This document shows, piece by piece, positions 574 to 3,500 of a DNA stretch of 64,000 nt. A program made the position numbers and the translations under genes. Within the stretch, counting starts at the first letter, position 1. Each line of letters begins with the position of its first letter. Source of the DNA: Ylistrum balloti (Eukaryota); NCBI RefSeq assembly GCF_031769215.1, contig NW_026782457.1:62001-126000 (forward strand). Direction: 5' to 3'. The notes below the pieces were generated by a model that saw nothing but the letters and a program-made list of their open reading frames with translations, was not told the origin of the DNA and did not search any database.

Positions 574-3500
574 TTAACTTTCACCATGTACCAGTTTGTA
601 AAACAAAGAGTGCGAGTTTTGTAGCAGGACCCTCGGAGAGTCCAGTTCAGCCACTTGACCCTGGTCCATCACCAACACCCTGTCACTGTCCATTATGGTG
701 TTGATTCTATGGGCAATGGTCAACACTGTACTCTCCACAAACTCCTGGCGGATTGTTTCTTGTATCAGCATGTCCGTCTCCAGATCTACACTGGCTGTAG
801 CTTCATCTATACAAAGTACCTTAAACGGATGAAAGCAACGATTACATATCCATATCACTATCAACATGATAAACCACATGTCCACAGCAAGGTTCAGATA
901 CAAAATACAAACAAACTGGTTTTGTTTTATTTTCTGATCAAGCCAAAATTATCATCTATTGATAGTTTATGCTTAACCATTATCAGAAAACGTTTGCTAT
1001 AAACTTTGTGTTCATGTATGACACAAACTCTGAGCAGTCCTTCAGAGCAGAAAATACAATAAAATTCTACATGATATGGATGCCAATGACAGAGAAGAAA
1101 ACAAATCTTCATAAGCAGCTGCTTTTTATTTGTCTTATCATTCTTTCTAAGGGTTCTACAAGCACACCTTTCTTTTGTTCAAACTTTGCTCTTTTCTCAA
1201 CAACTCTAAAACAGATTTGTTAGTACTTCAGAACTTCAGAATTTCCCCACCTTTGCTTTGGTAAGAAGTGCCCTTGCCAGACACATAAGTTGCCTCTGAC
1301 CAACAGAAAAGTGCCGTCCCTTTTCTGCCACCTCCCCCTCGAGTCCTCCAAGTCTGTCTACAGGTAGGCGAAGGTGGCATCTGTCCAGGACACCCCACAG
1401 TTCCTCGTCACTGTAACAAGACGTGGGGTCGAGATTCTCCCTGACGGTACCACTAAAGAGGAATGGGTCCTGAGGAATCACAGCCAGATGTCGTCTAATA
1501 AAAATTAAAATGTTTCACAAATCAAAATCATCGCCACATCAAACATATTTTCATGGTCATTTATTTTTTAGCTCGGCAAATGTTTTAAAACATCTGTCTC
1601 CTCTATAAAGCCTACTGATAAATCTTAAAGCAAATATTTCAGCAATTGTCAACTGAACATACATCAATACAGGACAAATCCATCAACACAGTTATAGAAA
1701 TCTTGTATCAGTCATTATTGTCACCGTAATCCAATGTCAGTATTCTACGACCTCACAACCAACCAGTGGTTTTAATCATTTCAACACACACTTGAATGTT
1801 ATGATGAAGAAGAAACTAACTGCAGCTTACGTGTAGATGGGTGTTTAATCTGTCTACTAGTTTCACCTCTATCACAGAGGCTTCATCAGGACAAATTTTG
1901 CTGACGGAAACCCTCTGAAGTATTCTTCAGGAAGAAAACTTTTAATTGTTAACTGCGATATAATGTACAATAGACAATTCTCAAGGGCAGGTGAGAGCCT
2001 TAATGTTCACACAGGTCATGTTTCTTTTAAAGTTTGAAGCAGTTATCAATTAAAACTATGGTAATGAAATATCATAACCAGTGTTATCTTTTAGCTCTCC
2101 TGCTTTTACTGTCCAAGGTTTTGCTCAAGAACCTAGAGTTAAGGGCCTATAAGAAGGAGGTTAATTCCTCTTGGGTGTCGGGCCATATGAAAAATATTTT
2201 GTCTATACATCTCCACCAAGCAATAGGTTCTTACAGGGCAGCTAGAAAACTTTGTTCTAAAAAGTAAATAGGAATTCAATGTGATGTTTACATCTTTTCA
2301 ACAGGACTGATAAATTCCTATACACTCTAAAGTGTGGTTCTATGTTGGCCAGGATGTTAATTCTTTCTGAGTCTTTCTCTACTCTAGGTCTCTTCTTCTC
2401 TGGATAGTTTGGTGGGTTGTCAGAGTTGTAAGTTGTAATGTATGTCATGAATCAATCACATATCTAACTCACAATCATGAGCAGTTTTGTGTATCTTTAA
2501 CATTACCCAGAACCAGTGTCACCTACCTCACATCCGTACATTACCCAGAACCAGTGTGACCTACCTCACATCTGTACATTACCCAGAACCAGTGTGACCT
2601 ACCTCACATCCGTACATTACCCACAACCAGTGTGACCTACCTCACATCCCTACATTACCCACACCCAGTGTGACCTACCTCACATCCCTACATTACCCAC
2701 AACCAGTGTGACCTACCTCACATCCGTACATTACCCACAACCAGTCTGACCTACCTCACATCCGAACATTACCCACAACCAATGTGACCTACCTCACATC
2801 CGTACATTACCCACAACCAGTCTGACCTACCTAACATCCTAACATTACCCACAACCAGTGTGACCTACCTCACATCCGTACATTACCCACAACCAGTGTG
2901 ACCTACCTCACATCCATACATTACCCACAACCAGTGTGACCTACCTCACATCCGTAAGATCCAAATGTTGAATATTCATCCCATCAATCTGAATTTCTCC
3001 ATGACTTATTTCTACAATGCGAAACAGTGCCAGAAAGAGGCTAGATTTCCCTGACCCAGTACGCCCAACAATGCCAAGTTTCTCCGCTGAGTATGTACTG
3101 AAGGAGATTCCATTCAAAGCATCAGGTAAGCCAAGTCGGTACTTGAGGTGTACATCCTTAAACTTGATCAACCCAGACTCTGGCCATGTCTGTGATACCT
3201 AAAGAAATCATGTAACGAATCGTTATAATCATTATAACTCTATAGTAGTATACTCAATACTCCAAGGGTCCTGATCTCTTTCACTCTCTGCACTCCTGGA
3301 TCAGGTCATGGCAAAATTGAAAGAACAAGTAATTTGATAGATCAACGCCATTACCTTGAGATTTGTTTGATGTACATCAAATGGTCAGACTAGTGTTTTT
3401 TGTCTTGTTGTCCATGGAACCTTCAATTTTGCCATAACATGTTCCAGAGTGCAGACAGAGAAAGTGATTGTAACCCCTGGAGTATTGTCAAGATGGGGAA

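Follow-up and report, generated by a model that had tools for sequence, protein, structure and literature searches.

Can a hammerhead ribozyme that looks intact inside a host intron be expected to cut the pre-mRNA that carries it? This question is raised by a 64,000-nucleotide (nt) stretch of the Ylistrum balloti genome (contig NW_026782457.1, positions 62,001 to 126,000; hereafter "the window," with positions counted from its first letter), in which an ABCC transporter gene runs on the minus strand. An earlier note on this DNA had described a near-intact hammerhead in sense orientation within an intron of that gene and had proposed that it may be retained and could cleave the pre-mRNA. We found a minimal type I hammerhead at 1847-1897 (minus strand), a spike in genomic copy number over it, an inverted remnant of a second hammerhead beside it, and flanks that are predicted to fold into competing structures. 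We consider it very probable that the motif is a solitary, immobile hammerhead of the kind carried by Penelope-like elements (PLEs), left by an old fragmentary insertion, that it cleaves not at all or only in trace amounts, and that its intact look does not stem from selection at this locus.

The intron contains a minimal type I hammerhead

From 1897 to 1847 on the minus strand, the motif reads AAUUUGUC CUGAUGA A GCCUCU GUGAU AGAGGU GAAA CUAG U A GACAGAUU, with the predicted scissile bond directly before GACAGAUU, between 1855 and 1854. Stem I pairs UUUGUC (1895-1890) with GACAGA (1854-1849) and includes one U.G pair; it is open, lacks a loop 1, and extends to 8 bp as AAUUUGUC/GACAGAUU (1897-1890/1854-1847). 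The core box CUGAUGA occupies 1889-1883 and is followed by an unpaired A at 1882. Stem II is formed by GCCUCU (1881-1876) and AGAGGU (1870-1865) around the loop GUGAU, or alternatively by 7 bp around a UGA loop, and its closing pair is a wobble between G10.1 (1881) and U11.1 (1865) that replaces G10.1-C11.1. The GAAA box (1864-1861) runs into the palindrome ACUAGU (1861-1856), in which A15.1 (A1861) pairs with U16.1 (U1856). H17, at the cleavage site, is A1855, the last base of the GUA triplet at 1857-1855, and an AUUAAA follows at 1849-1844 on the same strand. Helix III has 2 bp and a 2-nt loop in the monomer and 6 bp when the palindrome pairs between two molecules. Both catalytic boxes, C3-U4-G5-A6-N7-G8-A9 and G12-A13-A14, are intact. 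The elements and the cut listed in the earlier note were all recovered at the same minus-strand positions. Its caveat about the 10.1-11.1 wobble was also borne out, since the wobble breaks a pair that is conserved in the minimal hammerhead ribozymes (min-HHRs) of PLEs. The "extra A" that it had pointed out is present at A1882 but is no defect, being a published trait of PLE min-HHRs.

The significance of the motif was assessed with a type I descriptor of our own, which requires stem I (4 bp or more), CUGANGA with or without an extra base after it, stem II (3 bp or more), GAAA, a short helix III, and UH. The hammerhead at 1897-1847 was the single match in the window. The expectation from 300 second-order Markov simulations was 0.04 matches per 64 kb, and none of the 300 gave a match with the quality and stem lengths of the intronic hammerhead; exact hammerhead patterns did not occur in shuffled sequence. 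By its architecture, the intronic motif is a real PLE-type minimal hammerhead, beyond what chance would produce.

The covariance-model search that had been recommended as a check was run and gave no match to the Rfam hammerhead models (RF00163, RF00008, RF02275-7, and RF03152) at the gathering threshold, and a search of 351 nt at E up to 10 likewise gave no hammerhead match. The best score on 66 nt was that of Hammerhead_3 (14.2 bits, E 0.71), far from its gathering threshold of 48.5; RAGATH-1-hammerhead gave 13.6 bits on the same 66 nt (threshold, 56.3), in an alignment that keeps the type I register but deletes helix III. When a min-HHR with C11.1 from metagenome contig MDSQ01014346.1 was scored as a control, it too remained below the Rfam threshold, at 19.8 bits. 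The negative result is largely a limit of the models and weak evidence both ways, because curated models do not cover PLE-type minimal hammerheads. The practical lesson is that Rfam models miss such hammerheads and that an Rfam negative should carry little weight for them.

The host intron spans 1495-2944 (minus strand), between the Walker A exon and the Q-loop/signature exon. From our reading of the exons, the Walker A exon (...LDLTDV) ends at 2945, the intron begins with GT at 2944-2943 and ends with AG at 1496-1495, the Q-loop/signature exon (which contains ...LSVGQRQL) covers 1494-1251, and the Walker B exon lies near 790-574. The hammerhead is in the sense orientation relative to this gene. 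The first exon (15091-13487) encodes 535 amino acids (aa) that by their features match the TMD0_ABC/ABC_membrane clusters, and a sequence search against structures returned MRP1, ABCC2, and ABCC3 at E about 1e-41. Judged by these matches, the host gene is a TMD0-bearing ABCC transporter. Of the claim that the motif lies in sense inside an ABCC10 intron, the orientation, the intron, and the family hold, with the identity of the gene established to the level of ABCC only.

A further feature of this intron is a tandem array at its start (window 2500-2956), with 12 copies of a 38-nt unit at 94% matches. In each unit, the final bases of the Walker A exon recur together with the 5' splice site (GGAUGUGAG/GUAGGU, with the slash marking the exon-intron boundary).

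The hammerhead is the high-copy unit of a dispersed repeat

DNA contigs of four runs, from two organisms, were aligned to 1236-2480 at a likeness of at least 80%. Contig depth was 13-20 over unique intron and 213-555 in the bins covering 1824-1907, a 15- to 30-fold pile-up bounded exactly by 1851-1897 (a block without strand assignment), over which depth climbs from about 16-20 to 280-555. The loose ends of the paralogous contigs fell at 1851, 1852, and 1856 on one side and at 1888, 1895, and 1897 on the other. Because these ends coincide with the borders of the motif, the high-copy unit is the hammerhead itself, set in unlike flanks and, in some subfamilies, carrying a different stem I. About 65 contigs aligned per run, most of them less than 95% alike, with varying flanks and stem I. 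The repeat is abundant in the genome, and the intronic hammerhead is one of its ordinary solo copies.

Some contigs shed light on how the unit is arranged elsewhere. One contig joint led from 1897 back to 1851 (47 nt) with 16 letters between, which shows that 63-nt tandem hammerhead arrays, consisting of the 47-nt motif and a 16-nt linker, are present elsewhere in the genome; published retrozyme units are far longer than this period. Among the paralogous contigs, a few longer ones, at about 83-87% identity, reached from 1832/1841 to 2009/2034. They delimit a likely element body at 1832-2034 (minus strand) with the hammerhead near its 3' end, so that the inserted element likely reaches about 140 nt beyond the motif on its upstream side and 10-20 nt on its downstream side. 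Further joints at 1894-1903/1966-1974 indicated differences among paralogs within the 70 nt that immediately precede the hammerhead, and the blocks at 1950-2033 and 2118-2243 are moderately repeated.

Within the 64-kb window itself, a second sense hammerhead was found neither with exact patterns nor with blastn of the intron, the descriptor, or a two-block search; blastn of the intron against the window returned no other copies of any kind. A scan of viral contigs for hammerhead relatives gave no match. A tRNA-derived short interspersed nuclear element was considered as the source of the repeat and rejected, as the intron contains no tRNA-like gene.

The same alignment gave one observation on the host gene. 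Over the Q-loop/signature exon (window 1236-1493), contig depth was 3-10 times background, and these contigs share differences at 1314 and 1335. This suggests that several paralogous ABC genes or exon copies exist in the genome.

An inverted, stem-II-less twin lies downstream

An inverted-repeat scan and the two-block search both pointed to a hammerhead remnant on the plus strand at 1797-1818, which reads UGUUAUGAUGAAG AA GAAACUA. It matches 11 of the 13 letters of the stem I/core block and then continues with the GAAACUA box. In place of the 16-nt stem II hairpin it has AA, and C3 is changed to A; because of this change at C3 the remnant is dead. In the whole 64 kb, the two-block search recovered only the hammerhead and this remnant (0.0 expected; none in 200 simulations), which is why we read the locus as a tail-to-tail twin: a near-intact sense copy and, 29 nt downstream on the opposite strand, a dead remnant without stem II. 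The gene-sense transcript of the remnant carries complements of the intact hammerhead's two catalytic boxes.

A second candidate twin, a decayed head-to-head copy on the plus strand at 1898-1952, was rejected. Its score of 21 compares with 19.2 +/- 3.9 in shuffled sequence and was reached in 652 of 2000 shuffles.

The motif resembles the minimal hammerheads of Penelope-like elements

In the min-HHRs of PLEs, helix II is long, helix I is short and open, and the G10.1-C11.1 pair is highly conserved (Cervera and De la Pena 2014, PMC4209133). They also conserve one unpaired nucleotide between A9 and G10.1, and positions 15.2-16.2 are palindromic, with an almost absent helix III that implies dimeric action (PMC4209133). 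They occur in thousands of heterogeneous, mostly solo copies per genome, with twin motifs on opposite strands (PMC4209133). The intronic copy shares the type I topology, the open stem I, the CUGAUGA and GAAA boxes, the unpaired A1882, a helix II of 6-7 bp, and the palindromic ACUAGU (1861-1856), and it too belongs to a massive heterogeneous copy family with twin motifs on opposite strands. It differs in having G10.1.U11.1 where theirs is G10.1-C11.1, in a stem I of 8 bp versus their 4-5, and in that neither a pseudo-long terminal repeat (pseudo-LTR) nor an intact reverse transcriptase (RT)/GIY-YIG open reading frame (ORF) could be demonstrated beside it. Among the published traits of PLE min-HHRs that we compared, it departs from G10.1-C11.1 only.

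The coding remains near the motif are scant. A moderately repeated block at 2118-2243 (minus strand; depth, 60-118) holds a frame at 2230-2150 that by eye resembles a PLE reverse transcriptase in its YxDD region; what we take to be the YIDD motif has decayed to CIDK, and the frame then runs into several stops. About 85 nt at background depth (2034-2117) separate this block from the one adjoining the hammerhead. A Pfam search at E up to 10 with seven stop-free pieces, the RT-like frame included, gave no match, as did a PDB search with the 27-aa RT-like piece; no GIY-YIG domain was seen beside the hammerhead. The RT relic in which the motif had been said to be embedded is therefore plausible by eye only, visible at 2230-2150 but without backing from Pfam or PDB. 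Taken together, these features point to a PLE origin of the intronic copy.

Metazoan non-LTR retrozymes are the next closest system (PMC7229834; Li et al. 2026, doi 10.64898/2026.07.22.740005). Like the intronic copy, they carry a type I hammerhead within a non-coding repeat that is low in GC, a few hundred bases long, and related to PLE pseudo-LTRs; the repeat occurs as dispersed monomers, many of them intronic, and in Xenopus about 43% of retrozyme copies lie within introns. Retrozymes are built of tandem units that release circular RNAs of 170-400 nt (Cervera and De la Pena 2020, PMC7229834; Li et al. 2026, doi 10.64898/2026.07.22.740005), and most of those in invertebrates have a stable helix III and loop-loop contacts (PMC7229834; doi 10.64898/2026.07.22.740005). 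In contrast, the window has one sense hammerhead, no loop 1, and no tandem units of 150-450 bp.

Conserved intronic hammerheads of the HH9/HH10 type are also sense type I hammerheads in introns of protein-coding genes and provide a precedent for the idea of pre-mRNA cleavage. They are canonical, fast, stabilized by tertiary contacts, and ultraconserved over hundreds of millions of years. The ABCC copy, on the other hand, is a minimal repeat copy that does not match those models, and the genomes compared here are only about 2-3% diverged. An extra nucleotide between A9 and G10.1 is also found in the plus-strand hammerhead of chrysanthemum chlorotic mottle viroid, where, according to De la Pena and Flores 2001 as cited in PMC4209133, the extra A10 is compatible with catalysis. 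That ribozyme belongs to type III, has stable helices as well as tertiary contacts, and differs in origin from the intronic copy, to which it is unrelated.

Related fold-backs were seen in two metagenome contigs, MDSQ01013442.1 (2260-2390) and MDSQ01014346.1 (2580-2680), which contain head-to-head twin minimal hammerheads. Both have the same stem II (GCCUCU/AGAGGC), C11.1, and either GAAACGUC or GAAACAUC. Neither has a nearby ORF longer than 113 aa or a PLE ORF, and Rfam labels the fold-backs as weak miRNA-like hairpins.

The intact look does not require selection at the locus

The earlier note had argued that the ribozyme is much better preserved than its surroundings and so may be retained. 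That it is better preserved is so. This is expected of a short module that is the most conserved part of its family, and it lends no support to retention. Between the window and its orthologous contigs the divergence is about 2-3%, and the contig records covering 1440-1882 and 1602-1882 have no differences within 1847-1882. At this divergence, the absence of changes in 36 nt has a P of about 0.4, as neutrality predicts, and for that reason it says nothing on constraint. Nor does likeness to the family, since the 47-nt hammerhead is the family's most conserved and highest-copy module genome-wide; such conservation would arise from selection in active elements and not at the ABCC locus. Only about 16 letters are strictly required in a hammerhead.

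The one departure at a conserved pair has a simple reading as well. U11.1 sits where C11.1-G12 would make a CpG, and because the two metagenome contigs with the same stem II carry C11.1, U11.1 is most simply explained as a CpG-to-TpG decay product. The practical lesson is that an intact-looking hammerhead core within a decayed element is to be expected.

Flanking sequence is predicted to compete with the active fold

Folded alone (1845-1900), the hammerhead is predicted to form stems I and II with probabilities of 0.97-1.0. In native contexts of 101-251 nt, these predicted probabilities fall to about 0. For 1790-1900, the minimum free energy (MFE) is -23.0 kcal/mol, and the best hammerhead-compatible fold, at -16.3, is 6.7 kcal/mol worse; for 1790-1930, the corresponding values are -34.7 and -25.2 kcal/mol, a difference of 9.5 kcal/mol. 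In the MFE fold of 1790-1900, CUGAUGAAG and GAAACUAG are paired with the transcript of the twin remnant. A second predicted competitor is the upstream stretch CAGAGGGUUUCCGUCAG (1905-1925, minus strand), which pairs with CUGAUGAAGCCUCUG of the hammerhead, although its complementarity is no more than expected by chance. With flanking sequence available to pair with both catalytic boxes, the prediction for the native context is that the active fold is strongly disfavored. We regard this flank competition as supportive rather than decisive, and as a reason to fold native flanks together with a motif before activity is proposed for it.

Dimerization offers no predicted way out. The intermolecular double hammerhead has a predicted energy of -31.8 kcal/mol compared with -32.0 for two monomers.

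A solo copy with little or no expected cleavage

The history that we favor would begin with the old, fragmentary insertion of a PLE, or of a non-autonomous derivative, which left the hammerhead and its inverted, stem-II-less twin in the intron. In the source elements, the motif would process element RNA; it would do so mostly as a dimer, within tandem or multimeric transcripts, and probably aided by an element protein. The intronic copy would be transcribed passively in the ABCC pre-mRNA and then removed with the intron. Its intact look would reflect its shortness and the conservation of the module in the active family, as set out above.

No or only trace cleavage would be expected because helix III has no partner in cis, because there are no loop-loop tertiary contacts, because the conserved 10.1-11.1 pair is a wobble, and because the flanks may sequester both catalytic boxes. 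With a helix III of 2 bp and a 2-nt loop, catalysis would need the dimeric form. Published systems point the same way. A single Schistosoma min-HHR showed no detectable cleavage in vitro, and its dimers cleave weakly; natural hammerheads owe their speed at physiological Mg2+ to loop-loop contacts (PMC4209133). A PLE hammerhead of Anolis cleaved only with the element's protein, and no transcriptome sequencing (RNA-seq) ends were found at its site. Even slow cleavage within the intron would, by analogy, not matter for splicing: as PMC2995048 summarizes Dye et al. 2006 and Fong et al. 2009, splicing in vivo proceeds normally when a hammerhead cuts the intron, and it takes a fast ribozyme to abort processing.

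Several points weigh against this account. The strictly conserved core letters are all intact, and a G.U pair at 10.1-11.1 may be tolerated. The intronic copy, U11.1 included, is common to contigs of both organisms, though these diverge too little for this to be telling. In the fold predictions, a 451-nt context restores the stem probability to 0.6. More generally, nearest-neighbor predictions ignore tertiary structure and the order of co-transcriptional folding, in which the hammerhead would be transcribed before its downstream competitor. Finally, the link to PLEs draws on motif traits and on an RT-like frame that profile searches did not support.

Among the alternatives, the one that fares best is occasional cleavage in trans without function, in which ACUAGU pairs with other RNAs of the family, or a PLE protein assists, and a small share of the pre-mRNA is cut. 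Many genomic copies have the same helix III and core, and both dimeric action and protein assistance are published for PLE-type hammerheads. The absence of a predicted energy gain for the double hammerhead speaks against it, as does stem I, which would also have to be intermolecular yet differs between subfamilies; the flanks, moreover, compete for the catalytic boxes here too. We judge this scenario unlikely. The suggestion that such ribozymes can work as dimers does not carry over to this locus, as the 64 kb contains no sense partner and the double hammerhead brings no predicted gain.

A retained cis-regulatory ribozyme that cuts nascent ABCC pre-mRNA and so lowers or tunes the output of mRNA, possibly in concert with the 12-copy 5' splice-site array, is the proposal closest to the earlier note, and we hold it to be very unlikely. 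The sense orientation and the intact core agree with it, as do the identity of the copy over 1847-1882 in orthologous contigs from four runs and two organisms and the transcription of the hammerhead ahead of its downstream competitor. That identity, however, equals the neutral expectation at 2-3% divergence, and with so abundant a motif family sense intronic copies are expected by chance. What is more, this is a single copy with a 2-bp helix III, no tertiary contacts, and G.U at the conserved pair, whereas single PLE min-HHRs are inactive in vitro. The competing folds are favored by 6.7-9.5 kcal/mol, and slow hammerhead cutting within an intron leaves splicing unimpaired in vivo, at least in the work summarized in PMC2995048. 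The claim that the motif is retained and could cleave the pre-mRNA is thus unsupported.

A more elaborate version, to which we would give scarcely any credence, has the sense hammerhead cut before the antisense twin is transcribed, with the twin acting as an off-switch that sequesters the two catalytic boxes; the result would be a kinetically gated tuning of ABCC mRNA, perhaps with the 12-fold array. If the intronic copy did cleave, it would stand as a rare invertebrate example of a minimal hammerhead that came from a transposon and was domesticated to cut host pre-mRNA. On present evidence, it adds one solo copy to a well-described class of repeat-borne ribozymes and is of little consequence.

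Two further alternatives concern the motif itself. In a permuted, type III-like reading, cleavage would occur at an upstream GUC (1905-1903) and stem I would be the hairpin AGCAAAAUUUGU. The top sub-threshold Rfam alignment, the Hammerhead_3 hit described above, is in that register. Its stem I has three weak pairs and its stem III two, against the 8-bp and 6-bp stems of the type I register, and the paralogous contigs end at the type I stem I borders, 1851 and 1897; such a reading is most improbable. That an AT-rich intron merely happens to contain hammerhead boxes has a vanishingly small chance of being right, for although no Rfam model accepts the motif, the bona fide min-HHR with C11.1 fails Rfam likewise, the descriptor expectation is low with no simulated match of such quality, the genome-wide pile-up is bounded by the motif, and the inverted remnant adjoins it.

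Other features of the window

Adjoining the ABCC gene, at 17258-18577 on the plus strand, is a single-exon ORF of 439 aa with an N-terminal membrane segment. Farther along, an uninterrupted ORF of 164 aa at 52051-52545 (minus strand) reads like a cyclophilin A-type peptidyl-prolyl isomerase and may be an intronless gene or a retrocopy. At 59424-60287 (minus strand), ORFs consist of a repeated 13-aa unit (PNVFSHSRTLLQF-like) and are probably a minisatellite rather than a gene; around them, at 58-62 kb, the GC skew is strongly positive.

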